Below are positions 21,510-61,223 of a DNA stretch of 64,000 nucleotides, piece by piece; the stretch's first letter is position 1, and each line of letters starts with the position of its first letter. The position numbers were made by a program, and so were the translations under genes. Location: NCBI GenBank assembly GCA_002104945.1, contig MCFH01000049.1, positions 62,001-126,000 on the forward strand, given 5' to 3'. The notes under the pieces are model-generated. The model did no database searches, had not been told where the DNA came from, and worked only from the letters and a program-made list of their open reading frames with translations. Source of the DNA: Piromyces finnis finn. Taxonomy: Eukaryota > Fungi > Neocallimastigomycota.

Positions 21510-22333
21510 TGTTTATAAACTGTCTCTTTATTTTTTATAGAAAAATTTTCTTATTCAATGTTTTCAAGAATTCCATCAATGAAATAACAAGTAGAAAAGT
21601 AGAATTCAAACTATTAAATAATAATGTTTATATATTAAAATTATGTATATTGTAAATATAGTTGTATAATTTTTTTTTTTTACTTTATTAATATCTTTTG
21701 AATCCTACTAATATAATTAATACTTACAATAACGAAATTATAAATAAAACAAAGAATTAAACCTCCAAAAAAATATATTTTATTGATATGTTCTTCATTA
21801 TCTATATTCATAAAAGAAATAATTGTAAAAACACCAGAAAAGAAAATTGAAATTCCTACTTGTATAAAAACTATAAATTTAAACCACTTTTTAAAATTTT
21901 TTAAAATTCCTTGTTTTTTCTAATATTAATATTAATAATAGTATAAATAAATAAAATTTTATTAATAAATAATTAAATTCATTTTCATTATTCATGTATA
22001 AAAAAAAAAATGAAATAAATATAATACTCACTCTTATAACACCATAAATAAGAATTAAATGATAAATACTGAAATAAAGAAACATAAAAGATACAGCAAA
22101 TTCTCCAACTTTTTTTCTCTCTGAGATATACAAATTGAAAATTGCATCAACAATAGCGTTACAAATCTTTATAATTTCGATTTAATTAATAAAATTTTTT
22201 TATACTAATTTATTTATTTTATTTTAATTTTTTTTAATTGAATACTACTTACTGCTAATAAAAGAGTGAAAATTATAACAGATATTTTCTTTGTTAGGAA
22301 AGGATAAAAAATACATTTATCTAAAAAACCAAA
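21510..22333 (-). pseudogene. Four-TM Cys-N-terminal family copy A (start codon lost, stops in last exon)
   Basis: Exon 1 reads GFLDKCIFYPFLTKKISV..., with GTAAGT/GTGAGT donors. The last exon reads EFYFSTCYFIDGILENIE*. Confidence 0.75.
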
Positions 22334-23119
22334 TTTTTCTTTCATTGTTTTATTATTATTACTTTAAAATTTTTATATATATAAATAGTTGAATTTTTTT
22401 TTTTTTAAAAATTAAATAATATTGGAAAATTATTTTCTTTTTATACATATTTCAATATTTGTGTAACCCTTCAAATTTTTTCATTTCTATTAAAATTTAA
22501 ATTGGTCATATATTATAATATATTGTTAATTAATCTAATATTAAAACTTTAATAAATATAAAATTTAATTGTGGAATCTTCTTTTTATCCTTTATATAAA
22601 TTTGATGAATAATGTATTAGTATGAGTTTTAAAAACATGTTAATTATATATATTGTATATTTTTAGTATGTCTTTTAAAAACATTATGTTAATTTATAAT
22701 ATAAATAATAAAACATTTAATAATGAAATATGTTGATGTATAATTATACTAACCGTTTAATTATTTTAAATAGGTAATGGATATTTATGTGTTCTATTTT
22801 TTAATTTTATTTTTTATATTTTGCTTTAATTATAGTTTTACACATTTTATTTTCATTTATTTTGTTTTTTTTTTTTTATTGCTAATTAAGAATTTTATAT
22901 TTTATATTTTTTTTTAATTATTTTACATCTCTTCATGTGAATTGGATTAGTTTAACATTTTATTATTTAACAATTGATAGTGAAAGAAATTATTTGATAC
23001 ATATTTTTTGAATATTTATATATATGGTTTGATATCCTATTTTATATATCGTTAACTGTAAAAATAGCCATTTTATAAGAAATTAAATATGTATTTTGAT
23101 ATTTTTTTTTAATTTTTAT

Positions 23120-23690
23120 AAACCATCTTTTTTTTTTTTTCTAACTGAATTTTCTAATTCATAGGATTTAATAAGACTATTAAAAAAATGGATATGTAAT
23201 AATCAATCTATTAAATTAAATATAATAATAGATATATAATTAGGCATATTACATTAATTTTCATTTTTTTTTCATTTCATATTATTATCTTTTTAATTTT
23301 ATTAATAATGCTAATATTTACATGAAATAAACTAATAATTAAACAAGAAATACTAATAATAATAATTATGGTGGTCAAGTCGACATTAATTAACTTTTTT
23401 GTTATATCCCTATTAATCACATATATTAAAGCGAGTAAAGCTATAGCTAAAATTTGAATAATAACGACAACTCTTAAAGATACTTTATTATTTTTTAAAT
23501 GACTTAGATTTTCCTAGTACAATATTTATAATATTTAAAATTCTTTGGAAAAAAATAATTTTTATTTACGTATAGAATTAAACTTACACATTGGAAACTA
23601 AAAATTATGTATATAAAAACACAAATTAATAAATGTTAAAATATTAAAAGTGCATTTGATACATCATCAAAATATTATACCTTATTATTA
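23120..23690 (-). pseudogene. Four-TM family copy B (exons 2-4 recognisable, degenerate)
   Basis: Exon 3 reads ENLSHLKNNKVSLRVVVIIQIL.... The last exon resembles ...SLIKSYELENSVRKK..DGL*. Exon 1 is not recognisable. Confidence 0.6.
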
Positions 23691-24750
23691 ATAAAAAAAC
23701 AATAATGACATGAATTTCTTTTTTTTTTATTTTTAATTTAAATATTATTATTATTAATAAATTTCACATTTATTTACCTTTAATTTACCTATGCTTTTTC
23801 GTTATAATTATTTATTGTAATTAATTATATTTTAGCTAAAGGTACTTTTAAATAATAAATATGTTTCTTCTCCTTCACAGCCTTCCTTTGTAATTTCTAT
23901 ATATAAATTTATGAAAAATTTTTAATAATTTGTGTAACCTCATCATTAATGAAAATAAATCAAATAATCAAACCTTAATAAATATAAAAATATAATGTGG
24001 AATAATCTTTAATTTATTTTTTTATTAAATTTAAATTTGAAGCATAAAAGAAATACCTAATAATAATATAAAATAGGCAGAAGTAGTAGTAGTAGAAATT
24101 GTTGTGTTGGTTGGTTTAGAGAGATATTTATTATTATTTAAAATGTTTTTTGAAAAAGAGCATTGAATATTATATAACAAAAATAATTGATAACAATGTA
24201 GCTTCATTGAAAAAAAAAGGTTTAATTAGTAATAAGATGATATGAAACGACTAATTATACAAATCCATAATAAAAATAATTTTGCATGGTTTACCACTAC
24301 AACAATACATATATAATTTTTTTTACAAGAAAAAACTACATTTATATCATTGAATTATTAGTGTTTCTCTATCAATACATTTCTTGACCATTCGTAATGT
24401 ATAGTATAATAGTGCTCAAATATAATATTCATTTATTGTATGTAAAGAACAAGCATTAACAATATATTTTGTTATATTTTTTTATTTAAAAATCTGATAC
24501 TATGATTATTAAAGGATATTAAAAGAACAAGGAATGCTTTTTTGCTTTTATCAATAATTAATATAATACTTATTTTTAATACTATTTATAATTGTATAAA
24601 AAATATATAATAATGATAATGAATAATATTTATTTTATTTAATATAAAAAAGTTACACAAAGATTAATGAAATTCGTATAAAAAGAAAAAAAAATTCAAA
24701 TTAAATAAAAAGTATTATAAATAAGAAATTATAATAAAAATTATAATGAA

Positions 24751-25510
24751 ATGGGTCTTTTTAGCAAATGTATTCTTTGTCCTTTCTTAACAAAGAAACA
24801 ATCTGTTAAAGTGTGTACTTATATATTACTTGTAAGTATTTTTTTAAGTAAATATGAAAATAAACAAAGAAAAATATAATAGTATGAAATTATGTATTAT
24901 GTTCAATGATATTAAATTAAAAGAAAAAAGGTTTTTTCATGTATTTTTCATCTTTAGTTATGAAATACTTTTTTCTATTTTTATAAATATTTCACTTATA
25001 TTCTTACTTTTAGGAATGAAAGATGTAAGTATATGTATTATTATTTGTTGCATATTTATAAATTTTATTAATTATTGATATTACAATAATTATGGATATT
25101 ATTATTAGAATGATCCTAAACTTTTAAAAAAATTTAAAAAATGGTTTAAAATCATTCTTATCCTTATATTAGCAATTTTCATATTTATTATTGCTTTAAT
25201 TATTTATCTGTATGTCCTTAGTCAAATTAAACTCGACATATATTTTAATTTATTTATAATTATTTTTTTAATTTATTATAGTATTTATGTAAGTAAAACA
25301 ATACATACAATTATATACACATATAATTGCATATGCATAATTCCAATAATTCTAATGTATTGTTATTATTTTTAAAATAAATATTTTTTTATTGTTTTTT
25401 TTTCAATTAACAAGGTTTATTACTACAAATTCACATGTCATTATGTTGATGAACTTATTAAAACTATTGAATTAGAAGAGTCAGCAAGAAAAGAAGAAGA
25501 CGGTATATAA
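24751..25510 (+). CDS. Four-TM family copy C (4 exons)
   Basis: MGLFSKCILCPFLTKKQSVKVCTYILL|gtaagt. The last exon is VYYYKFTCHYVDELIKTIELEESARKEEDGI*. Confidence 0.8.
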
Positions 25511-26394
25511 ATATTCAAAATGTATAAAAATTTTGTTGGTTGTAAAATGATTTTTTTTACAATGAACAAAATATAAAAAATTGGATATTCAACAAGTATC
25601 TATAAAAATAAATAATATAAAAAAAACAATAGTTATAAAATAAATTAAAGTATTGAACAAAATTCAATTATCATAAACAAAATATATGAAAAAAAAAAAA
25701 AGATAATAAAAATTAAAAATAGACAAACAAAAATAATAACTAACTAAAAAAAAAAATAAAATGTAAAATTATAATTAAAATAAAAGTTAAAAAAAGCAAA
25801 AGAAAAAACAAAAACACATAGATATAATATAAATAAACTGTTAAAATAGGTAAAATTCTGTATATTTGTATTTATTTAATGGCTTTGTTTTATGAAAATT
25901 GATATCAATTTATAAAATTTATAGTAGTAATAAATAATAATAATAATAATAATAAAAAGATTTTAATTAATAATTTCTTGTTAAATTATTGTTCTTCTTT
26001 AATTAGTGAAACTATTCCATTCGATTATCCCTATAAATAATTAAATATTATTTATAAAAAATAATAAAAAAAAAATACTATTATCAATTTACACTATATT
26101 TTATATGTGTGCATTTTATTCATTCATTTAATGATAATATTAGAATATCAATCCACAATATTTTGAATGTTCAAGGTAAAAAGTTATTTTAATACTATTA
26201 TTATTATAATTCTATATAAAAAATAAAAATTACATTATTAAACAGAACTTATATTTTATTTTTATTCGAATTTAGAAAATAAAAATAAAATAATTAGGTA
26301 TTATGATTATATATTTTATCTTTTGAATATACTAAAAGATAAAACTAAAAGGTTGGTAAAAATAAAGAAATAATAGTCCAATTAAATATACTTT

Positions 26395-28587: not shown

Positions 28588-28624
<37 letters not shown>

Positions 28625-29184: not shown

Positions 29185-30016
29185 CTAATTTCTAACTGAA
29201 CCTTCTGATTCATAAGCTCTAATAAGTCTATTGAAATAACGCAATGTAGATATACAGTAATCAATCTATTATATTAAAAAAAGTAATTCACACACATATA
29301 GATAGATAATTTTAAATATTAATTTTTTACTTTTTAATTTCATATTAATATCTTTTGAATGTTTTTAATATTATTAATACTTACAAGAACTAAACCAAAA
29401 ACTAAACATGGAATAACAATAACAATAATAGTGATCGCCAAGCTATTATTTATTAAAGTATTGTAAAAATACATCATACATACGATATAGGAACCGGAAA
29501 TAATTGTAATCATAATTTGAATAATACTAATAATTAATGAAAGTACTTTAACTATTTTTAATTGCTTTAGATTATTCTAATAAAATATTAGTAATAAATA
29601 ATTAATATTTCATATTTATAAACAAATAAAATTTTACTATCATAATTTATATATTTGTAGTAAAAAAAAAATACTTTTATATATAAATAATTAAACTTAC
29701 ACTTTTGAAACCATAAAATATATATATATATATAAAAATGGAAGCAATCATTAAAATAAATAATAGATTTACACCATAATCAATAAGATAGATTATTAAA
29801 TAAAAGGCAAAAATAGCATGAATCATCTTTATTTTTTCAATTAAATATTATTTAGTAAATAAATTTTAAATTAATATACTTTCTTTTTTTTTTTTTTGTT
29901 ATAATTAATTGTATTTTTAGTCATTAAATACTTACAAATAATATAAAAGTGAATATTTTAATGTATAGTTCCTTACTTATGCAAGGACAACAAATACATC
30001 TATCAAAAAAGTCCAT
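29185..30016 (-). CDS. Four-TM family copy E (4 exons)
   Basis: MDFFDRCICCPCISKELYIKIFTFILF|gtaagt, open exon 3, last exon IDYCISTLRYFNRLIRAYESEGSVRN*. Confidence 0.78.
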
Positions 30017-31930: not shown

Positions 31931-33172
31931 TCATAGTAATATATCCCTTTGATAAAAGTAAATATATTATCAAGTGAAAAATCGTGTATGAATTATCATT
32001 CTTTTTTTTTTTTTTTTTTTGTTGAACTTTAGTACATTGATTATTTCATTAATTATACATGATTATTTATTAATACTTTAAAAATATAATCTTAAAACAA
32101 AAAAAAAAAAAAAAAAAAAAAAATATTAAATATTAATATTTTGTGGGTTTATTAAATATATATACATATATTTACTTTAATTTATTTATTAAAAAAAAAA
32201 AAAAAAACTACACCAACAAATATTTTTTATTCTAATATTTTTCACTGATGTTATTGATATGCCTTTCTTTCTTGACATAAAATTATAAGAGTAATCAAAA
32301 TAATGTAATTATAATAATAATAGTATAACTTTTAGTTTTAATAGAAAATTATTATTAAAGGATTATTTTTTTTTAAAAATATTTTAAATAAATATAATCT
32401 TTTTTTACTATTATTTATTATTACTATGAATTATAAAAATATTTAATTTTTAAAATATAAGATGAATCTATTAAAAATAAATAAAATATTTTAATATATA
32501 CAAAACTTTTTATTTTAATGTTTTGTTAATGTTATATACATATGATTTTTTTAACCTTATCTTTATTCTTTTTATTTTTATTTAATTATTATTTTACAGT
32601 TTTTTTTAATATTTCTCTTTTTTAAATATTTTATTTTTTTATTTTATTTATATTTTTTATGTCTTTTTTTTTTTAATCATGAAAATTAAATTAGTAAGAT
32701 ATTTAATAATAATATCTTATTTGTTTATAGCAATTGATATAAAGCTTTTTTAAAGTATATCATTTATTTATTTACTAATTAAAAATTCAATTTTTTATAT
32801 CTCATTAACTGTAAAAAAAAATCATTTTACAACAAACTATATTAATATTCTGGTATTTCTTTTTAGATATTTATAAACCATCTTCTTCCTTTCTAGCTGA
32901 ATCTTCTAATTCAAGAGTTTTAAGAATTTTATCGACATAATCACAAACAGATATGTAAAAACCAATCTATTAAATATAATTTTTATTTATAAATAATAAT
33001 AAATTACAATAATATACAATGTAAATTTTATTTTATATATATAGCTTCTTTTTTTTATTTATTTATTATTTTTTATAATTTTATTAAGATCATTATTACT
33101 TACGTGAAGGGAAAAAACAATTAAATTTAATGCACCATTAATAAAAAATAATTTATATATGATATCCTCATT

Positions 33173-33954
33173 TGATATAATTTGATAATAATCTTAATTT
33201 TGAATTTTACTTCAAAAAGTGATTATTATATTATATCTTAAGTTATAACTATATAAGTTATATGGATTAGAATTTGAAATTGTTTTTATAAAGATTAATA
33301 AAATTGTTTTATTAAAAACACTAAATTGTTTTATTAGAAACACTCGTTTTTCTAATATTTAAATATTTAAAATTTTATTTAATTAATTATAAAAGTGATT
33401 ATTAAAATTATAATATTTCTTTATTAATAATAATAATAATGATTAAAATAAGAATATTTACATGTATTTATATTTTCTTTTAATTTTAAACTATTTACAT
33501 TAAAACAATAAAATTAATAACTATTTACAATAAAAGTAATTAGAAATAACAATAAAAGAAATAATTAAAAGTTAAAGAATATAAAAAGTTGTTTATTTTA
33601 CAATTAATTAAAGTAATAATTATTTTTAGTATTTTAATAAAAGTGTTTAATTATATTATTTTATAACATGAATTATTATATTTGTTTACTTTTAAAGTGT
33701 AATTTACTAACGAAGTTATTAAACATTTAATTTAACAATTAATTTAACAAAAGTTATATATTTTGATCTCGATTAATTAAAGTTTATTATTTTCTTTCAA
33801 TAATCAAAACATATGCAGTGTTTAGGATTAATTTTATTTAAGAATTTTGGTAAAGTACTTAATTAAACTATAACTTGTTTTAAGTTACTTTTAGGGTTAA
33901 CTTAAAAATCAGGTATAATAATAATTTTATATTTATTAATTTCATTATTTATCA
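33173..33954 (-). repeat. 3' LTR; 33353-33954 is identical to 39627-40228, 33173-33352 is unique
   Basis: 602-bp blocks read identical by eye. Confidence 0.85.
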
Positions 33955-33967
33955 GTTTCTCGGCCTT

Positions 33968-36900
33968 TTAAGAATTAACTTCGTCCCTTGAAGTTAAATT
34001 TTGTTCTGGTAGAACGTAAGGAAAAATATTTTTAATATGTACATTTCTATCAAGTAGTTTTCCTGTATGTGGATCTTCAAGTACAACAGTATTAAATTTT
34101 TGTTTATTAACAACTTTATAAGGACCATAAAAATAAGGATTTAATTTACTTCTTCCTATTAATCTTATCATAACATAATCACCTGGTTTATAAGTTTTCT
34201 TTAAAGCTTTGGATAAACCTATTCTATGTTCCCAATATTGATTAGCATGATTAGAATATTCAGTAGCTTGTTTTACCCATTTTTGATGCCTTAAAAATCT
34301 TCGAAAAATATATTCTTCTTCTGTTTCATTAGGATCTTTATAAATATCAGGAAACATTATTTCTAATGGCCATGTGTCTCTTCTACCATATAATAGTTCG
34401 AAACTACTAAACTTAGTTTTTGAATTTTTGGTGGTTCTAAGTGCCCAAAGTGCAGATGGTAAATATTCATCCCATTCGGATTCATTTTCAATTAAAAGTC
34501 TTAAAGTTTTTCCAATTTCTTTGTTTCTATTTTCAATCATACCATTAGATTGTGGGTGATGAGGAGAAACAAAATGAACCCATGATCCATATAGATCAAT
34601 CATCATTTTAGTAATATCAGACATAAACGAACTTCCATTATCAGTAACAATTATTTCTGGTGGACCGTGTCTTGTTATTACTTCTATTAAAAATTTTATT
34701 ACTTCTTCTGATTTCATATTTGGGATTGCTTTAGCTTCAACCCATTTGGTGAAATAATCAACAAGGGTAATAATATAAGAATTTCCATGTTTAGTAAGTG
34801 GTAATGGACCAACTATATCTAATCCGACTCTAGTAAATGGTTGTTCAATTGGGGTTATATTATCTTCAGTATTTTTAGGTAAAGGCTTAGGTCTACAAAG
34901 TTGACATTTTCTACAGGACTTTACCCACATTCTAACATCATTCCAAATACCAGGCCAATAATAAGATTTTAAAATTCTATTTGTGGTCTTTTCAGCACCT
35001 TCATGACCAACAGAATGAGCACGACTAATAATATCTTTTTTATCTTCATCTTTGTAAATAACTTTAAGATATAATTCATCTTTTTTATAATAAAGAGTAT
35101 TATCAACAACTTGATAATTTTTAGTAAAATATTTTTTTATTCCTTCAGGTAGGTCTAAATCTCTTGGATTAAAATCAGACAAAATTGCATAAGCACAATT
35201 TACTATTTCATCAGAATTTTTAGAAGGTAATCTTGAAAGGGCATCAGCAAAAACATTTTTCTTTCCTTTATCATATTTTAATTCAATTTTATATTTATTA
35301 AATTCTTCAATCCATCTTGCATGTCTACCTTTTGATGGAATATTCTTTTTATAAAATCCCAGTAATGGTTTATGATCAGTAATTAATATGGTAGGATTTT
35401 TATTACTTATAATATATTGACAAAATTGTAGAATTGCATAATAAATAGCTAATCCTTCAAGGTCAGTAACAGAATAATTCTTTTCTGAAGTAGATAAAGT
35501 ACGACTAATACAACAAATTGGATGTTCCAATTTGTCCCCCTCCACCTGTAAGAGTACAGCACCAATGCCATTAGTTGATGCATCAGTACGAATAATAAAT
35601 TCTTTATTAAAATCAGGATAACTTAAAATAGGATCACTTAATAGACATTGTCGGATATCTTCAAAAGCATTATTACATTCTTGTGACCAAATATATTCTT
35701 GGTCTTTCTTTAATAAATTAAAAAGAGAGCTTGCTCTAATAGAAAAATTTTGAATAAATTTGCGGTAGTAACTAGCTAAACCTAGGAATGATCTTAGTTC
35801 ATTAACATTTTTTGGAGCATTCCATAAAGCAATACTTTGAACTTTAGAAGGAACAGTTTTTAATCCGTTAGGTGTAAGTACATGTCCTAGTACTTCTACC
35901 TTTTCTTGAAAGAATTTACATTTTTGTAAATTAAGAGAAAGATTATATTTAGATAATATTTCAAAAACTTGTTGCAAATGATAAAGATGTTCTTCTGGTG
36001 ATTTAGAATAAACAACAATATCATCAATGTAAACAAAAAGACATTTACCAATTAATGGTAAGAGAATCCTATTCATTTCTCGCTGGAAAGTAGCGGGAGC
36101 ATTAGTTAAACCAAATGGCATTACTTTAAAATTATAATTACCAAATTTCGTTGTAAAAGCAGTTTTTTCAATATCATTTGGGTTCATAGGAATTTGGTGA
36201 TAGCCAGAGTATAAATCTAAAGCAGAAAATATTTTTGCACCATTAACAGAAGATATTAATTCATCAATAAAAGGAAGTGCATAAGAATCCTTAATAGTAA
36301 TTTCATTAAGTCTTCTATAATCAATACACATTCTCCATTTACCATTTTTCTTTTGTACAAGTAAAACTGGAAATGACCATGGAGAGTGAGAAGGAGTAAT
36401 TAAACCTTTATCAAGTAATGAAAGAATTTCACTTTTTAAAATATCAGCATGTTCCTTAGATAATTTATAAGGTTTTAATTTTATTGGTTTATTAGTAGTA
36501 GTAATTATAGAATGAGGTTCTAAATCCGCAGTAGTTAATTGAGACATTGATGTAGCCATACAATTTTTATATTTATTTATAATGTGTTCAAATTTTGATT
36601 TAATATTATCAGGTATTGAATTTAAGATTTCTTTTAACGTATCTTGAAATTCTTGGTTTTCTTCTTTTGAAATAATTATAGAATTCATTAAGGGAATATC
36701 ATTAGCATCATTATCATTACTATTGATAATGTTTGTAATTTTCTTTAAACCTTTTTTAGTTTTCTGGTATATATAATCATCATCAGGGTCAATAAATAAA
36801 CGGTATTTCTTTTGAATACCTCTTCCAAAAATTATATCAAAGTATGGATTACTTTGTTCAATAATATAAAATTTTTCTAAAATAGTACAACAATTATTAA

Positions 36901-37822
36901 TATTTATTTTTAAAGTAGTAAAAACATTTGTAGGAACAGTAGTACCATTAGCAATAGTTATATTTTGTTCCTTATCACTTTTTTCAATATTTTTATTTGA
37001 TAGTTTATTAAAACCATTTGTAGTAATGATATTGACATTTGCGCCAGTATCATAAAGAATTTTTAAATATTTTCCATCTATATCACCAATTATTAATGGA
37101 ATATTAGAGTTATTAAAGGAGTACATCACTTTTTCAACTTTAGGTTTACATCCTTGTTCTAATTCTTTTCTAAGCGATGGACTAGCAGAGAGTAATTGAG
37201 AAAGACTTATTTTTGGATATAAATTATTTGCTTCTTTAATTATACTAAATTTATCTTTGGTTTTTAACATTTGTATTTCTGTCATATTTCTTTTTGTAGT
37301 TACCTTGGGTTTGACAAGATTTTTCTTTACTTTTATATTATTAGTTTCATTATTATTTTTAAAAGTTTCTTCATTAGTAGAATTGTTAGAATCATTAATT
37401 TCAATAGGTTGGATATGTTCTTTTGTATTCGTAACTTCTTCTAAAGGTATTTCATTGGTATTATTTTGTTCTTCTTCACTTTCTATTTCTGTTTCTTCAT
37501 TTGGGATTTCTTCCATCTCTTCATCTTTATCTTCACTAATTTTTCTTCTACGAGTATCTCTAATATTCTTCTTTTGTTGTTTTAAATTCCTAATGTTGGG
37601 TTGGTTAAGTATTGAGGGTTTGACAATACTTTTATTATTTGGTGATATTTTATTTTTATCTAGTGTTTTAACATTTATTCTCTTCTTTTGAGCGGCATTT
37701 ATAGAATAATTATTTTCATTAGAGATATTAGAATTTATTTGGGCTTCTTGTACCTTTTGTGAATTGTTTGCAATTTTAGTTTTTATGGGAGATTGCTTAC
37801 TCCCATTATTTAGTTTAAATGA
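33968..37822 (-). CDS. pol: Gypsy Pol (aspartic protease, RT, RNase H, integrase); expressed by -1 frameshift from gag
   Basis: ILYDTGANVN, YIDDIVVY, IRTDAS, HSVGH...CRKC, GLDIVGPL, TDNGSSF, PQSNGMIE and GPY motifs. The frame stays open upstream of the tracked Met (37516) to 37822. Confidence 0.95.
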   Translation of the reverse strand, partial: SFKLNNGSKQSPIKTKIANNSQKVQEAQINSNISNENNYSINAAQKKRINVKTLDKNKISPNNKSIVKPSILNQPNIRNLKQQKKNIRDTRRRKISEDKDEEMEEIPNEETEIESEEEQNNTNEIPLEEVTNTKEHIQPIEINDSNNSTNEETFKNNNETNNIKVKKNLVKPKVTTKRNMTEIQMLKTKDKFSIIKEANNLYPKISLSQLLSASPSLRKELEQGCKPKVEKVMYSFNNSNIPLIIGDIDGKYLKILYDTGANVNIITTNGFNKLSNKNIEKSDKEQNITIANGTTVPTNVFTTLKININNCCTILEKFYIIEQSNPYFDIIFGRGIQKKYRLFIDPDDDYIYQKTKKGLKKITNIINSNDNDANDIPLMNSIIISKEENQEFQDTLKEILNSIPDNIKSKFEHIINKYKNCMATSMSQLTTADLEPHSIITTTNKPIKLKPYKLSKEHADILKSEILSLLDKGLITPSHSPWSFPVLLVQKKNGKWRMCIDYRRLNEITIKDSYALPFIDELISSVNGAKIFSALDLYSGYHQIPMNPNDIEKTAFTTKFGNYNFKVMPFGLTNAPATFQREMNRILLPLIGKCLFVYIDDIVVYSKSPEEHLYHLQQVFEILSKYNLSLNLQKCKFFQEKVEVLGHVLTPNGLKTVPSKVQSIALWNAPKNVNELRSFLGLASYYRKFIQNFSIRASSLFNLLKKDQEYIWSQECNNAFEDIRQCLLSDPILSYPDFNKEFIIRTDASTNGIGAVLLQVEGDKLEHPICCISRTLSTSEKNYSVTDLEGLAIYYAILQFCQYIISNKNPTILITDHKPLLGFYKKNIPSKGRHARWIEEFNKYKIELKYDKGKKNVFADALSRLPSKNSDEIVNCAYAILSDFNPRDLDLPEGIKKYFTKNYQVVDNTLYYKKDELYLKVIYKDEDKKDIISRAHSVGHEGAEKTTNRILKSYYWPGIWNDVRMWVKSCRKCQLCRPKPLPKNTEDNITPIEQPFTRVGLDIVGPLPLTKHGNSYIITLVDYFTKWVEAKAIPNMKSEEVIKFLIEVITRHGPPEIIVTDNGSSFMSDITKMMIDLYGSWVHFVSPHHPQSNGMIENRNKEIGKTLRLLIENESEWDEYLPSALWALRTTKNSKTKFSSFELLYGRRDTWPLEIMFPDIYKDPNETEEEYIFRRFLRHQKWVKQATEYSNHANQYWEHRIGLSKALKKTYKPGDYVMIRLIGRSKLNPYFYGPYKVVNKQKFNTVVLEDPHTGKLLDRNVHIKNIFPYVLPEQNLTSRDEVNS
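37785..37819 (-). other. -1 programmed ribosomal frameshift signal
   Basis: U UUA AAC heptamer in the gag frame, 6-nt spacer, stem ATGGGAG/CTCCCAT with an 8-nt loop. Confidence 0.85.
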
Positions 37823-38778
37823 TTATATTCATCATCTAATTCTGGACAATCATTCGTAGTATGACCTATTCTTTTACAATTTAAACAAACATTAATTTTT
37901 AGGTCAGCAAGCTTTTGAGTTATTTCTTTTAGTTCATCATCATTATTTTGTGGATATTTTAAGGTACTTCTTCTTTGCTCAACATTTTGACTAATATTAT
38001 TAAATCTTGGATAATTATTGTTATTATTATTGTAGTTATTATTTTGAATATTACTATTATAATTATTATTTCTGTAGTTATTAGTATAATTTCTATTATT
38101 ATAATTTTTAAAACTATTTTGGGTGGTATTATTATTATTCATTCGGTTATAACTATTAAAATTATTGGAATATGCTTTATCATTATTTCTTTGAGCATTA
38201 TTATCATTTGGAGATCTTCTAGAATTAATGGAAGTTCTTATTTTTGGTCTATTTTCTTCAACTATATTGAAAATTTTCTCTTTCTTGATAGTAATGTTTC
38301 TGGCTTCTTCTAAACTTTTTGGTTCAGCTTCTAAAAGTGCTTCGTAAGTTTTAGTAAGGTTTCTAAAAGCATTAATATAGTAGGACAATATGATTTCATT
38401 TGACATTTTTAAGTTTGTTTTATTTATTAAAGAGTCAAGTTTAATATTGAATTCAGATACACTTTCATTTTTCTTTATTGTAATAGTAGACAATTCTAAT
38501 AATCTAGAATTCTTTGGTACTGAACCTTTAAAATGACTTTTAAGGTTTTTGATGATGGTATTATAATCATCTGGTGTTTCTTTATTTAATGCATTAACTA
38601 CAATTGTTCTAGCTGTACCTGTAGTTAATGATATAAGGTATTCTAACTTTTCTTGTTCTGGTACCTTATATAAATTACACCAATGTTTGAAAGAAAATTC
38701 CCAATCATCAAATTCAACCTTTGTTGAACCCAAAATAGATATTCTATTAAAGGTAATACCTTTAGTAGTATTATCCAT
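37810..38778 (-). CDS. gag: Gypsy Gag (capsid plus CCHC zinc knuckle)
   Basis: 322-aa ORF upstream of pol with C-terminal CLNCKRIGHTTNDC. Confidence 0.92.
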   Translation of the reverse strand: MDNTTKGITFNRISILGSTKVEFDDWEFSFKHWCNLYKVPEQEKLEYLISLTTGTARTIVVNALNKETPDDYNTIIKNLKSHFKGSVPKNSRLLELSTITIKKNESVSEFNIKLDSLINKTNLKMSNEIILSYYINAFRNLTKTYEALLEAEPKSLEEARNITIKKEKIFNIVEENRPKIRTSINSRRSPNDNNAQRNNDKAYSNNFNSYNRMNNNNTTQNSFKNYNNRNYTNNYRNNNYNSNIQNNNYNNNNNNYPRFNNISQNVEQRRSTLKYPQNNDDELKEITQKLADLKINVCLNCKRIGHTTNDCPELDDEYNHLN

Positions 38779-39349
38779 TATTACTTATTATTTTTATTTT
38801 ATTTTATTTTATTTTATTTTAATATTCTATTTAAAAGTTCAATTTTTATTTATTCTCAATAATTTAGTTATAGGTACAATAATATGTTTTTATTTACAAT
38901 AGTCTTTATTTACAATAATATAATTTTATTTACAGGTATTTTATTTATTACTGTTATTAATAAAATATAATCTTATATAACGTTTATATAATGTAATATA
39001 AAAGGAGTAATTGGTTGTTGTTTGTAAACACTTGTAGACACTTGCTTTAGTTTTATTGTAATTAAGAAGATTTTATTTTTTTTTTGAGAAAATGTTAAGA
39101 ATATATTTTATTTATATTAAGTTATTTATATATTAGTATTGTTAAAAAAAATATTTAATTTAGAGTAGGATGTTTATTTTTATTTCTTTATTATAAAGCC
39201 GAAAATAATATTGATTATGTTATTATAGTACCTTCAGAGTACCCGACAGTTTCGTCACCGTGCCTTTCGACCTCCACTAACTAACCGTCATAAATATTAA
39301 GTGGTGTAATATTTACTTATTAGTTAGCGCTCTACTCCCCCACGATATG

Positions 39350-40228
39350 TGATAAAACTGCACTCTTACTAACTTACTATAAAACACTTTAATTATCTTA
39401 GTAATTAATTAACCGAAAAGATAAACAAAAGTTATTTTTCGCTGAAAATTAACTAAAAAGACAACTCAATATTATTGCTTTTATTATTTAAAATTTATAA
39501 CAATACTTTTAATTTTATTTGACCGATGATTATATTTTATAATTAAATAATTTTTATCTTTAATTTATAAATTATAATTATTAATTTATAATTATAATTT
39601 ATGTATTTCTTTTTCTTTTTTTTTTTTAATATTTAAATATTTAAAATTTTATTTAATTAATTATAAAAGTGATTATTAAAATTATAATATTTCTTTATTA
39701 ATAATAATAATAATGATTAAAATAAGAATATTTACATGTATTTATATTTTCTTTTAATTTTAAACTATTTACATTAAAACAATAAAATTAATAACTATTT
39801 ACAATAAAAGTAATTAGAAATAACAATAAAAGAAATAATTAAAAGTTAAAGAATATAAAAAGTTGTTTATTTTACAATTAATTAAAGTAATAATTATTTT
39901 TAGTATTTTAATAAAAGTGTTTAATTATATTATTTTATAACATGAATTATTATATTTGTTTACTTTTAAAGTGTAATTTACTAACGAAGTTATTAAACAT
40001 TTAATTTAACAATTAATTTAACAAAAGTTATATATTTTGATCTCGATTAATTAAAGTTTATTATTTTCTTTCAATAATCAAAACATATGCAGTGTTTAGG
40101 ATTAATTTTATTTAAGAATTTTGGTAAAGTACTTAATTAAACTATAACTTGTTTTAAGTTACTTTTAGGGTTAACTTAAAAATCAGGTATAATAATAATT
40201 TTATATTTATTAATTTCATTATTTATCA
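39350..40228 (-). repeat. 5' LTR (TGATAAA...TTTATCA terminal inverted repeat)
   Basis: Shares 602 bp with the 3' LTR. The inner boundary is inferred from the terminal inverted repeat and a nearby PBS-like TGGGGGAG. Confidence 0.75.
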
Positions 40229-40237
40229 CATTTTGTG

Positions 40238-40768
40238 TCGTTCCAGTTTTTATCCTGGTTGTTAAGGCGTTTCCTTAGCATACATAAGGCTTCTGATTCG
40301 ACCCCGCAGATGTCAGTGCCTGTGGATTTTCCCACTGGGTTTGCCATGGGTTGGGTTATGATATTCAGGTAAGTATAAATGAACTTTCTAATTTACTACT
40401 ATGATAATAACACTCGTCTAGCCGGCCTGAGAGGGTCTAGTGTACATGGTACATTCCAAATTAGAACTTAATAAGTGGTGACTTAGGCTATGCCAAAAAC
40501 ACATAATATTCCTTAATCAATTTAAGTGTAAACATTAGGGGGCGGTTGACACGTGATCCTCTTGACTATAAGAGGCTTAGCATTGTAGTTGTGAAATATC
40601 GTACAACGACATGCATCTAATGTACATGGATTAAGTGAGCGTCGAAGCTGAAGAAACAGTATGACAGACCAGGAGGGTCACAACCACCTAGCAATAGGAA
40701 TGAGCCAACGTTTCTCTAAGAACCACCATTGGAGCTAACTCTGATCGATGGGAGAAATGCACTCGGAA

Positions 40769-40799
<31 letters not shown>
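40238..40799 (+). mobile_element. SINE-like retroposon: tRNA-like head, unique core, LINE-related block, poly(A)
   Basis: TSD CATTTTGTG (40229-40237 and 40801-40809), 28-nt poly(A), tRNA-spaced D-arm, TTAGCAT loop and GATTCGACCC B-box, second copy at 30860-31047. Confidence 0.78.
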
Positions 40800-40803
<4 letters not shown>

Positions 40804-41989
40804 TTTGTGAAATCACCTTTATATCAATAATAAAAATACTAAAAGCAAATAATGCAATTATAATTGGAATTTGTAAAAGAATAACAAATCTAAAGATAGT
40901 TTTAGCTTTTTTCAATTTTTCTTGATTCTTCAACTTATAATAATGTTAAATTATAATTAAGTAATTTATATTAAAAATTTTTATAATTAGTTTAATTATT
41001 ATAATTTATTACTAATTCGTAAAAGGAAATAACATTACGTTTAATATATATAATTATTATACTTACTTTCTTGACGCTATAAAGAATAGATGAATTTACA
41101 ACAACGTTTATAAATAAAATAACACTAATTATCGTACCTTGAATATTGATATATGAAAAGAAAATTATGGCAGAAAGCATCTTTTTTTTTTTTAATTTAA
41201 TTATTTTAATTTGTAAGATTTCATACATTAAATTCGCAATTATATTATCTATTATTTTTAGAAAAATACTTACAATAATGTAATAAATAAAAAATATAGC
41301 ATATTCCTTTTTTACGAAAGGAAAACAACAACTTATAATGTGAAAGCTCATTTTCCTTTATTATTATTTAATATTATTTTATTGTTATTCTTTTTATTAT
41401 AAATAATTTTATTATTAAATTTTATATCGTTTAATTTTTTTTTTTTAAAATTTCAAAAATTGGAAATTATTTTTTTTTATATGAATTTCATTATTTTGTG
41501 TAACTTTTCAAATTTTTTCTTTTCAATTAAAATTTAAATTGTTCATATATTAATTCATTGGTAATTAATAAAACATAAAAACTTTAATAAATATAAAAAT
41601 GAATTGTAGAATAATCTTTAATTTATTTTTTTATTATTAATTTATAAATGATACATAAAAAATAAATAATAATAATAAAATAATAAGAAATAAATAATAA
41701 TATTTATAACTCATAATAATTAAAATGAATTAATAATACTGGTAAGAATGATAATTTATTATTTATTTTGAAATGTAAAATGAAGAAATTCATTGAAACA
41801 TTAGTTAAAAAGTAATGTTATAAAAGGTTTAATATAAATATTATTAATGATTATTTTTTTTTTATTATACTATATATTTATATTTAATAAATTAAAAGAT
41901 TATTCAACAATTCATTTTTATATTTATTAAGGTTTCTATATTTTTATTAATTACTAATGAATTAAAAAATATAAAATTACACAAGAATA

Positions 41990-42067
41990 ATGAGAATCTA
42001 CATTATTAGTCATATTAAAATTCTTGAATTAAAAAACTCAGCTAGTAAAGAATAAGATGCTTTTTAA
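41990..42067 (+). pseudogene. Four-TM family remnant G (promoter block joined to a decayed last exon)
   Basis: ...HIKILELKNSASKE*DAF*, followed by the family 3'-UTR hairpin at ~42084-42107. Confidence 0.6.
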
Positions 42068-43067
42068 ATAATAACTGAGATGGCTGTAAAATGATTCTTT
42101 TTACAGTTGACTGAATATAAAAAAACGGAATATCAATTAATATGTAAAAATATATATTTTGAAAAAATCGTTATCATAATAATTGTTTTAAATAAATAAA
42201 TAAAAAAAAGTTGAAGAATATTTACTAAACTTCATACATATATATAAAAATAATTAAATTATAAAATATAAAATATGAAAATATTTTATAATTTATAAAA
42301 AAATAAAATTAAAATATCATTAAAAAAACATCATCAAACTATTAAAATAATTAAAGGTTTTATATATTTAATAAATTGTTTGTTTATTTGATAGTTCAGT
42401 TATATAAATACTAACATAATAACATAATATTTATAAAATTTATAGTAAAATAAAAAAATATATTATTTATATTATCATAATAAAAAGCTATAATTTAGTA
42501 ATAATTTTTTGTTATTAAAGCTATTCCATTTGATTATTCTAATGTCATTTTAGTATTATTTCAGTCTTAATTCTATTAAAAAATGGATTAAATTGTAGGT
42601 ATATATTATTCTTAAATTCAAACAAACATAAAATAAGAAAAAATATTATTATTTTAATAATAAAATATAAAAAAACAATAAAATCAATAGAAAATAGAAT
42701 AATATTTAAATTTAAATATATATTTACTTTTTTTTTTAAAAAAAAAAAGTTTAAATTTTTTGCTTTATTTTTACTTTTATTTTTTTAATGTTTTAATTAC
42801 ATTTTTTTTTAATTCTTAACATTTTCTATTTTTATTTCTTATTTATTTATAATATATATTTTGTATAATAGCAATAACAATATTTTAATTTTTATAGTTA
42901 TAATAATTGTTATTAAAAAAGGATTTATTAAAAAATATATATATATTTAATATATATTCAATTCTTTATATTTCATTATCTGTAAAAAAATTCATTTTAC
43001 AACTAATTGAATATGTATTTTGTTATTATTGTATATTTTCAGATATTTATAAACTATTTTTTTTTCA

Positions 43068-50161: not shown

Positions 50162-50290
50162 AAAGAAGAAAGTGCAAAGAAAGACAAAATATTAAAAGAT
50201 GCTCTAATCAATAAAACAATTTTATTATTTAAACATAAAAAAAATCATATTATTAATTAAAATATAATTCATATAATTATAAACAAAACA

Positions 50291-50530
50291 TAGCTATAAT
50301 CTATAGTGATTAATAACCTCATAAATATTATAATTATTAAAAAAAGTTATAATCTATAGTGATTAATAACCTCATAAATATTATAATTATTAAAATAGCT
50401 ATAATCTATAGTGATTAATAACCTCATAAATATTATAATTATTAAAATAGCTATAATCTATAGTGATTAATAACCTCATAAATATTATATTATTATTAAA
50501 AAAAGTTATAATCTATAGTGATTATAAACA
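50291..50530. repeat. Minisatellite, 52-55-bp unit, ~4.5 copies plus degenerate copies to ~50690
   Basis: Unit core (GC/GT)TATAATCTATAGTGATTAATAACCTCATAAATATTATAATTATTAAAA. Confidence 0.92.
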
Positions 50531-52049
50531 TAACATAGTTATTATGCTTTTAATGTAAAAGCATCGTAAAATATTATATTATCAAAAAAAGCTATAATCT
50601 ATAAAACGATTATAAACAATTATTATATTTTTATTAAAATAGCTATAATCTATTATGATTATAAGCAATCATAAAATATTATTATTAAAACATAGTTATT
50701 ATGCTTTTAATGTAAAAGCATCTTTAAATATTTTAAAAAAAACTTTTACGAAAAACCTTTTATTATTAATATCATTTTAAAATATAATTTTTAAAAATTA
50801 AAATAAAAAATTAAATATAAAATAATATTGTAATTCTTTTTTTTTTTTTTGGTGCATGTGACTTGTAATCAAAAAGAAATATTAATATTATTGTTATATT
50901 TTTATTGTTTTGAAATATAGATAAAAGGTCATTTATTTATTATATCTCTTTAAATATTAACATTTTAATAATGTATGTCTCCTATGTATGATAGGATGTT
51001 TTTTTTTTTTTTTTTTTTTTTTTTTTGACTCTTGGTAAGGTGCCTTCATTTATCAAAATATAATAAATAAATATATAATTAAAATAACATTATTATACAC
51101 AGTAACATTTATAAGATATATGTATTGAATTGCAATCCTTTTATATTATAAAAATATAAAAAGTTTATTCATTTTTTTTTTTTTTTTTATGAATATAGAA
51201 AAACTTATCATTATTATCAATATATAAAAAAATTATATATTATTAAATAAGAAAAAGAAATCATATATATTACATATATCTAATATCTAATATAATTAAA
51301 AATAAAATATAATAATCAAAAGAATTAATAGTATAAAATATAAATGTATTTACGAAATAAGATAGGTAGATAAATCTTGTTAAATTAGACATTTTTTTTT
51401 TTATATCAAATATTTTGTTTTTAATTTTTAACCCAATATATAAAATAAAAGCATGAAAGTAGTTATAAATATATGTACTAATTGTTGAGTATTTTTAAAT
51501 CTAATGATTATACTTTAGTATAATAGTGGTGGCTTTCTTACTTTAATTAAAATGACTAGAATACATTATACCCAATTTTTATTCATTTGTGTTGATTTAA
51601 CTTGGGAAGGTACCTTCATTTATTTAATAAATAAAGTTTCTCAAAGGGGCTCTACTCATGCTCATGGTACTTGAGAGAGTAGAAAAAAAATCCAAGTATT
51701 GCGCAATGGATACTTGGTTAGTCTTTAAAGCAAAATTATAAGGACTAAGCTCATGGTACTGAGCGATTAAAAAACATTTATCCATCGAATTTAAGTTTTT
51801 GATGGATAAGTTGAATTGTTTGGTATTCAGGTAAGTTTGTATAGTATTTAATTTAATTAGAAGAGTAATACATTTTGTTGCTGTATTTTTTCTTTTATTC
51901 ATGTATTCATGGAGTACTACTCTTTTCTTGTAAGAATCCAATGTATTCAACTTTAGGATTTGCATTGTATTTTTATATTCATGTAGCTATTGTTGTATTA
52001 TTTCTTGTAAGAGACTGATTCACTCTACATCATGTAAAAATACTATTCA

Positions 52050-54740
52050 CAAGCTTTCTGGTGTCGACATTCTTGATTTGGAGCATTGGTATGAAGAACC
52101 AATGAATAAACGTTTTTCACTTCCTATGCTTGATGAGTGGGATATCAACCAAGATATTAGTATTGATGAGGTCAAGTCGGCTATCCTCTCTACTCCAAAT
52201 TATAAAGCATCAGGTCCAGATGGTATTCCAATTGAATTTTTACCAAGCATTAATTCCATCAAGTAATGATTCTAATAATGCTACAGATAATAATTCTTCC
52301 GGTAATACCACTTCAGATAATGATGCTCATGGTTTAAATTTTATCCTTAAATTACTCAACCGTATTTGGGATGGAGACTTCCCCAGCTCATGGAATGAAT
52401 CCAGTATTGTTTCTATTCCTAAGAAGGGAGATTTGACAGATTGTGATTGTGATGTGATAACTATCGAGGTTTATCACTTATCAATAATGGTATTAAGTTG
52501 ATTTCAAAAATTGTCACCACTAGAATCAATTTGGTTTTCGAAAAAAGAGAGTATCAGTCTTTTCATTTCAATCCAAGAAATATGTCGTAGACGTCAATTA
52601 GATAATAAAGAGACATATTTGGCCTTTTTTAAATCTCAGGAAAGCATACGATTCAGTCCCAATTGGTAATATTCTCCATAAATTAGATTGTTTAGGTGTT
52701 TAGGAATCCGAGGGGTAAGAGTTTACAATTTATCAAAAAATTTATATTTAACATCTAAGGCTAATGTCAAATTAGATGAACAATTCTCGAAATCTTTTGA
52801 TGTGAAGAAAGGAGTCCGCCGGGGTTGCCCACTTTCACCCATTCTCTTTAATCTCTTTATTAATGATATATTTAGAAAGTGCGAAGATCTTGGAGTCAGT
52901 TTAGGTGACGCTCGATGCTGTGGTGGACGTTTTGCAGATGATATAGTTATTTGTGCTCCAACAAGAGGATGCTTAAAAAAGATGCTTAGAAGAGTTAATG
53001 AATGGGCATTGTATAATGAAATGAAATTTGGTATCCAGAAATGTTCAACGATGGTGATTCGTCCTGAATCTATAGAAAATCAGAACATGAAGGAACCAAC
53101 ATTTTACTTAGCAGGACAACCCATTCCAACTACTGACTGCTACACTTATATTGGTGTTCCATTGGATAAGAATCTGTCCCTTAAACCAGTTATTAAAACT
53201 CTTAATAATAAAGTTTTGAAAGGACTCTTTTCAGTCAGTAAATTCTTAAAAAAATCCTAATATTCCTATTCCTTTCGAAAAAGCTAGTACTTAACTCACA
53301 AGTGATTAAGCAGAGTTTCAATACTTAACTCACAAGTGATTAGCAGAGTTTCAATACTTTGCACCATTACTTGGATCCAACAAAGCTAGGTCTAGGATTG
53401 CTCAGAAGCATGTTAACAAAGGAGTACGATGGGTTGCCGGAGTTCATAAAGCTGTATCGTTTATATCTTTATACTCTATCTCAAAAGATTTGAATATTCC
53501 TCCATTGTCAGCCAAATGTGCTTTAGCTCAGGTTAGATGTTTTAACAAATGGAAAAACTCAAATTGTATTATCTCACACCTTGTCAATTACATTCCTAAA
53601 TTTAGAAAATACACGTGGTGCAAATTAAGTAGGACACTTGATAAAAAACTAAAGAAGCATGGAGATGTTAAAGCAATTAAAAACTTTTATTGGAAAGATC
53701 TCAAAGGGAATTCAATCAAAGCGCAATATTATGATGATAATAAATTTATTGAAACTAAAGATTTTATTAAATTATGTTATGAATACCCAGAGTTTGCCTA
53801 TGGTTTCTACTGGCTATTGAAAGCAAGAAGCGGATACAAGTTGGATGCTAGAGTTGCCAAAGCTGCCAAATTTGTTGATCCAGTTTGTCCTAACTACTGT
53901 CTATGTTGCAAGTGTGGAGATCAAAGTATTAAACATTGGTTATTAGATTGTCCAACATTTAGAGATATCCGTATTAAACATTATGATTCCATAGTCCAGC
54001 TATTAAATTTTTTCAGTCAACGTAATTCCAACAGTCCTATCAATAATATAGAAAATATTAATAAAAGTAGAGATAGCAATAACATTAATAGTAATAGTAA
54101 CAATAGTACTAATAACAATAACAATAGTAATAGTAACATTAGTAATAATAACAATAGTAATAGTAACAATGGTAATAATAACAATAATAGTAGTAGAAAT
54201 AATAATATTAGTAATGATAGCAATAGTGAAGATAATAATTCTAATTTAGATAGTAATTTAGTTAATAATAGTAATAGTTCTAATAATCCGGTGAATATTA
54301 ATGTGTATAATTATTCTAGTGTGTGCAGTAAAATATTTAAATTCCTTCTTGGGGGAAGAAGTTTTAACAATATCAATTACAATTCAAGGGAATGGAAAGA
54401 ACTTTGTAAGCGTCAGATTCAATCTGGTACTAACGAAGGAACACCATTCTTGACGGTAACCACGGAACTTCTAACCAAAATCATGCCTTTTGTTATTGGC
54501 CAGCAATGGTCAACAAAAGGTTTGAAACAACAGCCAAGAGCATCAATGCTGAAGAAACAGTAAGACAGGCCAGGAGGGCCAGCGCAACCAATGGAGATCA
54601 TAATTTTGTCCCATGACAAAATTTTGATCTTTGGCTCGCTCGATGTCCCATTGAAAGTCAAATACAATTATTATACTTTGTATAATACTTTAATTATAGT
54701 TATTAGATTACATTATACCCAATTTTTATTCATTTGTGTT
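52050..54740 (+). mobile_element. Non-LTR retrotransposon (LINE) ORF2, frameshifted and 5'-incomplete
   Basis: KASGPDGIPIEF, IVSIPKKGD, GVRRGCPLSPILFNLFIND, FADDIVI, CYTYIGVPL and zinc finger CLCCKCGDQSIKHWLLDC, spread across several frames. Confidence 0.93.
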
Positions 54741-55536: not shown

Positions 55537-56416
55537 ATGGGTTTTTTCGATAAATGTATTTGTTGTCCTTGCTTAAGTAAGAAACAATCTGTTAAAGTTT
55601 GCGCTTACATATTAATTGTAAGTAGTTTTTTTTTAACTAGAAACATTTTTAAAGTAAAAAAAAAAAAAATATTGTTATTATGATGCATATTTACTAATTA
55701 AATGATATTTTAATAATTTAAAAAAAAGGCAGTTGAAATTCTTAGTTGTTTATCAATTAATGGTGAATATAGTAATTATAGATATAATAATACATTATCA
55801 GTTATTATATCAATTGCTATTATAGGCACACTTATTTTCTTACTTTATGGAATGCAAACCGTAGGTTTATAAAAATGAACTATTATTAATGTATTTATTT
55901 TATAATTAATAATATTTTTATTATTAATTCTTTTTATAGAACAATCCAAAATACTTAAGCCAATTTAAATTAGTTTTCGGAATTGTTCTTGCCTTTCAAC
56001 TTATACACGATGCTATAATAATGTTCGGTTTAGTATTATTATATACTGGTGCCAATAGTGTTGATTCAAATATGTTTGAAGATGAAATGATGAATGCCAA
56101 CACTGAAACCATAAAAAGTACATTTAAAACAGTAGTAGTCTCTTTTATGATTTTTGTAATTATTGATGCTTTCGTTTTTGTAAGTATTGAAAATAACAAT
56201 AGAATTAAAAAAAAATAAGATAATAAATTAAACTATATAAAACTATTCTTTAAAACTAATGTATTGTCATTTTTGAAATAAAAAAAATATATTTTCATTT
56301 AATAGATTGATTATTACTTTTCCACTAAAAATTACATTAACGAACTTCTTGAAACCATTGAATCTGAAGACTATGTCAGAAAGGAAGAAAGTGGTGTTAA
56401 GGGAGAAAATAATTAA
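55537..56416 (+). CDS. Four-TM family copy K (4 exons)
   Basis: MGFFDKCICCPCLSKKQSVKVCAYILI|gtaagt. The last exon is IDYYFSTKNYINELLETIESEDYVRKEESGVKGENN*. Confidence 0.85.
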
Positions 56417-56765: not shown

Positions 56766-56841
<76 letters not shown>

Positions 56842-60046: not shown

Positions 60047-60515
60047 ATGTTTTTATATGATAAATGTTGGCACTGTTGTTGCTTATCTAAAGAAGCTTCA
60101 GTTAAATTTTGTACATGGTTGTATCTTGTAAGTATAGCTATTTTTTTAATAAAAAGAAATAAATAATTTATTAGAAAAAAAATATAATCTTGAAATATAA
60201 AATTGAAATAAAAAAAAAACAATTTTTTTTTTTTATATTAATTATATTATATTTCTATTATTCTTACCTATCTAGATTTTTGATATTTTATATATGATAC
60301 ACCATTTAATGTTTATAAAAAATGGTGATTTTAGTGTTTATGTTTTATTTTTTATAACTTTTATTGCCATTCTATCCCTCATATTTTTACTTTGTGGGTT
60401 AAAAAAGGTAAGTACTCATTTTTGAAATTTTTTTTTTTTTTTTTTTTTTATAATAAATGACTTTATTAGATAAAAGAAAAAACTATATTTTTAAATGTCT
60501 TTAAAATAATTCAAC

Positions 60516-60559
<44 letters not shown>

Positions 60560-61114
60560 TAGGGAAAAATATCCTTTTTGACACAATTTAATTGGATATT
60601 TGGGGCTTATACTATTATCATAGTATTTAATTGTATTGCTTGGTGTATCATCTATGGATATATGTTTAAAGATTCTGGTAATCATGATTTCATAGAGGAA
60701 GCTCGACAAAGAATAATGAAATATAACCATAATAAAAATATATCTGATGAAGAAATTACTAAAAATATTAAATTTATTTCTATTAGTGGAATCATTATTC
60801 ATTGTGTTATATTTTTCATTACTGTAAATATTATCAATATATATATATATAATAAATTAAAAAATGAAAGAATAACTTTTTCTTTTTTGTATATACACTA
60901 ATTTTTATTTAATTCTTTTATTTATTTCATTAAAAATTTTATACTTTTTATTTATTGTTTTATTCAAATATTTAAAGATTATTTATTTCTTTTCGACATT
61001 TTATTATATAAAAAGTATAAATCAAAAAAGTAATGAAGAATTGGAGTCTAGAAAATTAGAATGTTTTAAAAAAGTATTAAAAACTATTCCCAATAATAAT
61101 AAAAATAAGAGTGA

Positions 61115-61145
<31 letters not shown>

Positions 61146-61223
61146 CATAACAATAATAAAGGCAGCAATAATAATACTTATAAAAACAATTCCAAGGATA
61201 ATGGACAGATTCTTCTTGTTTAA
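60047..61223 (+). CDS. Four-TM family copy L (4 exons; long second loop, Asn-rich C-terminal extension)
   Basis: MFLYDKCWHCCCLSKEASVKFCTWLYL|gtaagt. Exon 3 overlaps ORF 60578-60901. The last exon IIYFFSTFYYIKS... continues into ORF 61041-61223. Confidence 0.78.

Follow-up and report, generated by a model that had tools for sequence, protein, structure and literature searches.

A clade-restricted family of tetraspan proteins evolving by birth and death at one locus of the anaerobic gut fungus Piromyces finnis

What are the many related genes that crowd one region of the genome of Piromyces finnis, and what might their products do? Anaerobic gut fungi (Neocallimastigomycota) are important plant-fibre degraders, and their cell-surface and membrane biology is almost unknown. 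We addressed this question in a window of 64,000 nucleotides (nt) of contig MCFH01000049.1 (GenBank assembly GCA_002104945.1; positions 62,001 to 126,000 of the contig, i.e., C177:62001-126000), in which a preliminary reading of the letters by themselves (the sequence-only reading) had described an array of about 14 copies of a gene for a protein with four transmembrane (TM) segments. We conclude that the array is a real, clade-restricted, uncharacterised family of four-TM (tetraspan) proteins that evolves by birth and death in one locus.

Exon-wise tblastn with copy c49182 as reference, together with a systematic survey of reading frames and splice sites, revealed 13 family units between positions 21,482 and 61,220 of the window, on both strands. 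Exons were used singly as probes, and whole-protein analyses were made on public database entries. The units share a common gene plan of four exons and three phase-0 introns (GTAAGT...AG) at matching positions, and the complete models encode products of 145 to 239 amino acids (aa). These traced gene models bear out the Cys-rich N-terminus, the approximately four hydrophobic segments, and the C-terminal motif that had been described, as well as the remark that such four-exon, three-intron genes are missed by lists of open reading frames (ORFs). The base composition of the window is extremely AT-rich (13 to 34% G+C per 2-kb bin). A degenerate exon-1 pattern gave 7 matches versus 0.41 expected by chance, and 7 matches were reached in no shuffle.

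The copies are found in very different states. Five are cleanly intact, namely c49182, c55537, c44641, c60047, and c30016. Three are doubtful, i.e., c27360 (GC donor, short exon 2), c43 (without the Cys cluster), and c22330, whose Cys motif has decayed to a single Cys in exon 1 and whose exon 4 stop precedes the acidic tail motif. Two are pseudogenes: c24751 carries a frameshift in exon 2, the donor and acceptor of which fall in different frames, and c23193 has broken exons 1 and 2 and a frameshifted exon 4. The frameshifts of both lie in homopolymers, and since the assembly is built from long reads, such pseudogenes may in part reflect sequencing errors. One copy, c41351/32966, is interrupted inside exon 3 by transposable elements (TEs), namely a short interspersed nuclear element (SINE) and a long terminal repeat (LTR) retrotransposon, and the last two units, at 28,493 and 41,999, are single-exon fragments. 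The idea of a multi-copy array therefore stands, with a count of 13 in place of about 14, and the earlier figure of about seven intact copies is fair as an upper estimate (five cleanly intact plus two to three doubtful). The pseudogenes, remnants, and TE-split copy that make up the remainder had been correctly anticipated, and they support birth-and-death evolution.

Public annotation provides a further view of the gene models. Nine public P. finnis gene models belong to the family, all of them hypothetical proteins, three auto-named MARVEL. Five (P0002, P0003, P0007, P0008, and P0009) have four exons and agree in residue count with our traced models, the doubtful c43 included, and P0003 is letter for letter the translation of c49182. 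Two others, P0001 (c44641) and P0006 (c27360), of 120 aa each, skip exon 2 (44811-44948 and 27554-27643, respectively) and lose one helix; either the annotation is at fault, or the two genes do not use exon 2. The public labels, whether hypothetical or MARVEL, should accordingly be handled with caution. The metagenome proteins P0011 and P0015 are encoded by uninterrupted ORFs on contigs of 1 to 2 kb, and their alignments pass ungapped through all three exon junctions. The simplest explanation is that both derive from complementary DNA, and they thus lend indirect support to the splice model.

Genome-wide (56.46 Mb, 232 contigs), exon-4, exon-1, and whole-protein probes detected approximately 18 units, 17 of which fall within a single region of 100 kb; exon 3, too divergent for the purpose, gave 2 matches only. 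Four further units (three complete and one remnant, two of the four being P0005 and P0004) lie upstream of the window at C177:22265-31684, beyond an array of leucine-rich repeat (LRR) genes. The end of a 22-kb contig (C75, ~2000-22186) is a reverse-oriented repeat of C177:~28-48 kb with identical exon matches, and probably represents a haplotype left unmerged or a duplication made in assembly. The only copy outside C177 and its haplotig is a singleton, G000:C150:18682-19560, with four exon-like blocks and an N-terminal Cys cluster.

Beyond this genome, we searched 1.84 billion representative proteins exhaustively with a 31-column profile of the C-terminal (exon-4) motif (E ≤ 0.001). The 12 matches comprised nine P. 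finnis proteins, one cluster with Neocallimastix lanati P0013, the metagenome protein P0011, and one spurious repeat protein, leaving 11 true matches. A word search added the full-length metagenome relative P0015 (188 aa) and one fragment; word-index searches were saturated by low-complexity words, such that even query members were missed, and one with P0013 gave no match. Likewise, two metagenome scans for relatives gave no match, and literature searches found nothing on this family. The relatives that carry both end motifs are P0013, P0015, and P0011. On the evidence of these sequence searches, the family is limited to the Neocallimastigomycota.

All members present four hydropathy peaks, and the AlphaFold model (mean predicted local distance difference test score, 79; predicted template modelling score, 0.65) contains helices at residues 15-38, 43-68, 71-104, and 127-180, the last of which extends from the membrane into the conserved tail. 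The N-terminus and the loop between TM2 and TM3 are rich in Lys, loop 2 is acidic, and one or more N-x-S/T sequons fall within loop 1 or loop 2 of each of the seven complete members with a Cys-cluster N-terminus (P0011, a model without the N-terminus, has no loop sequon). Because of this charge pattern and the loop sequons, both termini are read as cytosolic, the orientation that these features suggest. Four or five Cys residues stand directly before helix 1, and juxtamembrane Cys on the cytosolic side is the usual setting of S-acylation; the cluster, on the presumed cytosolic side, thus most likely fits S-acylation (palmitoylation). N-myristoylation at Gly2 was considered unlikely, given that Phe at position 3 departs from the usual consensus.

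The best conserved parts are exon 1, the loop that joins TM2 to TM3, and the initial 30 residues encoded by exon 4. Y155, T159, and Y162 are invariant at spacing i, i+4, i+7. By eye, loop 2 ranges from nearly absent to approximately 30 residues and contains Cys in no member. The tails contain neither PY motifs nor clear YxxPhi sorting motifs, and an NPxY sorting motif in the TM2-TM3 loop was dropped as a candidate, being present in few copies only.

The closest pair, c49182 and c55537, was used to examine how these parts evolve. Identity between the two is 91% in exon 1, 99% in intron 1, 67% in exon 2, 71% in intron 2, 56% in exon 3, 79% in intron 3, and 77% in the exon 4 core. Since intron 1 is 99% identical versus 56% for exon 3, the 5' end of this pair has clearly been homogenised by gene conversion. 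Nei-Gojobori estimates of dN/dS were 0.13/0.55 (~0.25) for cytosolic-side codons and 0.83/0.70 (~1.2) for the outer helix halves and loops. These values indicate that the cytosolic parts are under purifying selection and that the outer half evolves neutrally or slightly faster, and the outer value, from one pair, fits relaxed constraint or diversifying selection alike.

The same pair has a dS of 0.5 to 0.9 outside the gene-conversion tract, and a tree of 12 proteins is star-like with very long branches, the sole supported pair being c60047 and P0015 (84/91). Consistently, the best genomic match of P0015 is exon 3 of c60047. With c60047 thus paired to a protein of another organism, some of the paralogy, at least, seems to predate the species. 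The sequence-only reading had spoken of rapid turnover, which these three observations do not bear out, as much of the paralogy may be old.

Eight to nine of 11 copies carry a conserved element of approximately 60 nt some 40 to 110 nt past their stop codons (e.g., at 25530-25590 [+], 32790-32850 [-], 21445-21505 [-], and 42085-42110 [+]), which is absent from c49182 and c55537. The element holds an A/U-rich hairpin of 7 to 9 bp with C-G, U-G, or U-A as closing pair, its folding z-scores are mixed (-4.5, -2.3, +0.2, and +1.2), and a whole-genome pattern search found it inside the locus only (4 matches; control, 0).

To which known proteins, if any, is the family related? No Pfam family reached threshold in 11 family proteins, and MARVEL (PF01284), tetraspanin, LAPTM/Mtp, DUF4728, and CD20 were unlisted in these proteins even at E ≤ 10; Glam1 (PF10912) was likewise unlisted in the Pfam scan. 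The best Pfam alignment, to DUF7807, was the sole one of near full length but reached 15.6 bits (E of 0.013; cut-off, 27 bits) and was obtained for P0003 only. The PF01284 and DUF7807 models gave no match against the genome, the PF01284 search, made exon by exon, being a weak test. A sequence search of the PDB returned noise only (E ≥ 0.02), and Foldseek with the AlphaFold model found nothing in the PDB at E ≤ 0.001.

An exhaustive structural search returned designed bundles, Kei1, tetraspanins, sarcospan, synaptophysin, and CD20 alike at Z scores of 7.5 to 10.6, below the stated helical-bundle background. Synaptophysin (9bra_s) had a Z of 7.6 with a root-mean-square deviation of 5.5 over 147 residues, at rank 29 after designed bundles, Kei1, and tetraspanins, and CD20 (6vja_C), with a Z of 7.5, is inside the background as well. 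As a generic bundle of four membrane helices, the AlphaFold model does not discriminate among the tetraspanin, MARVEL, and CD20 folds. The nearest neighbours in a protein language model were nematode Glam1 and DUF7807 clusters auto-named MARVEL (0.89 to 0.91; 185 to 194 shared features), and the tool's own check rated its top family as probably wrong (3 of 10 best matches agree). LAPTM4B and DUF4728 were weaker neighbours (0.83 to 0.85); an earlier likening of the layout to LAPTM/DUF4728-type tetraspans finds no more than this.

We favour, with moderate confidence, a lineage-restricted, probably S-acylated tetraspan scaffold with a conserved cytosolic face that evolves by birth and death. The products would be small integral membrane proteins with four TM helices and both ends in the cytosol, and the 4 to 5 Cys before helix 1 would be S-acylated, anchoring the N-terminus at the inner leaflet. 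Helix 4 would continue into a conserved cytosolic helix with the invariant residues (i, i+4, i+7) on or near one face. The constrained cytosolic ends and the short TM2-TM3 loop probably serve to bind a conserved partner inside the cell or a further subunit, and the outer helix halves and two exoplasmic loops would be free to vary in length and sequence. Such a role would resemble that of MARVEL-type or tetraspan scaffolds, i.e., organising membrane patches or vesicle traffic, and not that of an enzyme or channel. Duplications in tandem and in inverted orientation, together with patchy gene conversion, decay, and TE insertion, would have built up the locus in P. finnis. With its signature motifs and clade restriction, the family offers a tractable entry to localisation, acylation, and life-cycle expression.

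Several points weigh against this scaffold: (i) no profile or structural match links the proteins to any characterised scaffold family; (ii) the alignment behind the AlphaFold model holds 8 sequences only; (iii) sequons are frequent by chance in an Asn-rich proteome; (iv) the dN/dS contrast comes from one nearly saturated pair; and (v) the gene models are built from genomic DNA and public protein entries alone.

It is unlikely, in our judgement, that the proteins are instead true, very divergent members of the MARVEL superfamily (MAL, physins, occludin, and fungal Nce102) with a role in cholesterol- or sphingolipid-rich membrane domains. UniRef does name P0002, P0003, and P0004 "MARVEL domain-containing protein" (but not P0005, P0007, P0008, or P0009), the four-helix architecture with presumed cytosolic ends agrees with such membership, and the nematode families nearest in the language model bear the same automatic name. 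However, PF01284 has no match at E ≤ 10 in the 11 proteins, the synaptophysin score falls inside the helical-bundle background, below tetraspanins and designed bundles, and the language-model assignment is probably wrong by its own check. The MARVEL label is architectural resemblance, not demonstrated membership.

A variable cell-surface recognition family, in which the exoplasmic loops diversify on host, bacterial, or fungal ligands and the cytosolic helix relays a signal, we hold to be quite unlikely. The outer dN/dS of ~1.2 versus 0.24 on the cytosolic side would be expected of such proteins, but a value of 1.2 from one saturated pair is indistinguishable from neutrality. Similarly, exon 3 of the closest pair (56%) is less alike than the flanking introns (71 to 79%), although intron likeness may reflect gene conversion and 88% A+T. 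Loop 2 length varies widely among members, yet a binding surface would call for longer loops. The clustered multi-copy locus with pseudogenes, whose members flank the LRR gene array on both sides on the same contig, would also suit recognition, but a large multi-pass transporter-like gene stands between the LRR and four-TM arrays; a link to that array and to host or microbe interaction, as the sequence-only reading had it, is speculation. More doubtful still is the fuller form of this idea, a polymorphic surface-recognition system in which selection would diversify the glycosylated outer loops of palmitoylated tetraspans, e.g., for the attachment of zoospores or the recognition of microbes or of self versus non-self, and in which the conserved cytosolic helix and a family-specific hairpin in the 3' untranslated region would provide common signalling and post-transcriptional control. 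If the outer-loop variation is adaptive, the locus would be among the first candidate recognition loci in the phylum; if not, it would be a clean case of birth-and-death evolution and gene conversion in an extremely AT-rich genome.

Least probable of these alternatives is that most copies are functionless, with one or two ancestral genes kept (e.g., the C150 singleton and c60047) and the array a decaying segmental duplication in a TE-rich, recombination-prone region: of the 13 units, at least 6 are fragments or carry breaks, the outer half changes at a neutral rate, TEs lie within and between copies, and the star-like tree has very long branches, but 5 copies keep all exons, splice sites, and open frames despite ~30% identity, the cytosolic dN/dS is ~0.25, and the end motifs and 3' flank element are kept across copies. 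The conserved positions of the introns, the purifying selection on the end regions, and the relatives in another genus rule out an origin from a TE or from chance ORFs.

The positions of the copies and of the TEs are collected in Table 1. An A/T-rich tandem repeat (unit of ~50 to 60 bp, ~8 copies) occupies 50240-50700, immediately 3' of c49182. Around the array, an intronless ORF at 17874-19529 (+), between the LRR and four-TM arrays, would encode a multi-pass membrane protein of 551 aa that looks, by eye, like a phosphate transporter of the PiT/PHO4 type. At the other end, the ORF at 61776-62321 (+) encodes 181 aa that begin like a signal peptide and include several Cys (no Pfam match at E ≤ 10), and 63575-63943 (-) is an ORF fragment that by eye is like a fungal alpha-1,2-mannosyltransferase (GT15, Ktr/Mnt type).

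Table 1. Family units and transposable elements in the window (window coordinates)
Feature	State or description	Position	Strand	Exons or parts	Public model
c22330	decayed	21551..22345	-	22345-22253, 22166-22032, 21919-21728, 21610-21554	
c23193	pseudogene	23119..23760	-	stops in exons 1 and 2; exon 3 23513-23322 open; exon 4 ~23210-23119 frameshifted	
c24751	probable pseudogene	24751..25510	+	exon 1 24751-24831; exon 2 ~24924-25024; exon 3 25109-25288; exon 4 25415-25507	
c27360	doubtful, 150 aa	27360..28166	+	27360-27440, 27554-27643 (GC for GT donor, short), 27745-27933, 28074-28163	P0006
Lone exon-1 fragment	without start codon	28493..28537	+		
c30016	intact, 159 aa, early tail end	29185..30016	-	30016-29936, 29826-29701, 29576-29385, 29265-29188	P0008 (same residue count)
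c41351/32966	TE-split copy	32874..41351	-	exon 1 41351-41274; exon 2 41180-41067; exon 3a 40927 to ~40805; exon 3b ~33193-33104; exon 4 32966-32874	
SINE and LTR retrotransposon	split c41351/32966	~33,173-40,800			
LTR retrotransposon ORFs	within the TE-split copy	33968..38778	-	gag 37810-38778; pol 33968-37516	
Lone exon-4 fragment	conserved 3' flank element kept	41999..42110	+		
c43	divergent, without Cys cluster, 145 aa	43070..43922	-	43922-43875, 43785-43672, 43544-43344, 43144-43073	P0009
c44641	intact by traced model, 166 aa	44641..45482	+	44641-44721, 44811-44948, 45082-45267, 45387-45479	P0001
c49182	reference, intact, 206 aa	49182..50161	+	49182-49262, 49380-49502, 49588-49839, 49997-50158, then stop codon	P0003 (identical)
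Non-LTR retrotransposon remnant	reverse-transcriptase-like ORFs, between c49182 and c55537; read by eye	51600..54700	+		
c55537	intact, 187 aa	55537..56416	+	55537-55617, 55729-55860, 55940-56179, 56306-56413	P0002 (same residue count)
c60047	intact, divergent, 239 aa, Asn-rich tail	60047..61223	+	60047-60127, 60276-60407, 60563-60823, 60978-61220	P0007 (same residue count)

How does the gut-fungus family compare with known four-pass proteins? The nematode Glam1 (PF10912) and DUF7807 (PF25093) families, its nearest four-TM neighbours in the language model, are animal families and uncharacterised in their own right. LAPTM/Mtp (PF03821) and DUF4728 (PF15860) proteins are alike in size, in having four helices, and in their cytosolic tail, but they differ in that no Pfam match connects them to the gut-fungus proteins, whose tails are without PY or clear YxxPhi motifs. 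Tetraspanins and MS4A-CD20 proteins are likewise four-pass and are often S-acylated on juxtamembrane Cys; they share no sequence similarity with the family, and their structural Z scores (7.5 to 8.8) are no better than those of designed helical bundles. Tetraspanins possess a CCG motif and a disulphide-bonded EC2, whereas loop 2 of the gut-fungus proteins is short and Cys-free; MS4A genes, as in the gut-fungus array, form tandem arrays with variable outer loops. MARVEL proteins (MAL, synaptophysin, occludin, and CMTM, and fungal Nce102/Fhn1) are also small, with four helices, cytosolic ends (presumed for the family studied here), and no catalytic motifs. Unlike them, the gut-fungus family has no Pfam MARVEL match, is clade-restricted, and resides in one tandem locus, and the N-terminal Cys cluster and the C-terminal helix motif belong to it and not to MARVEL.

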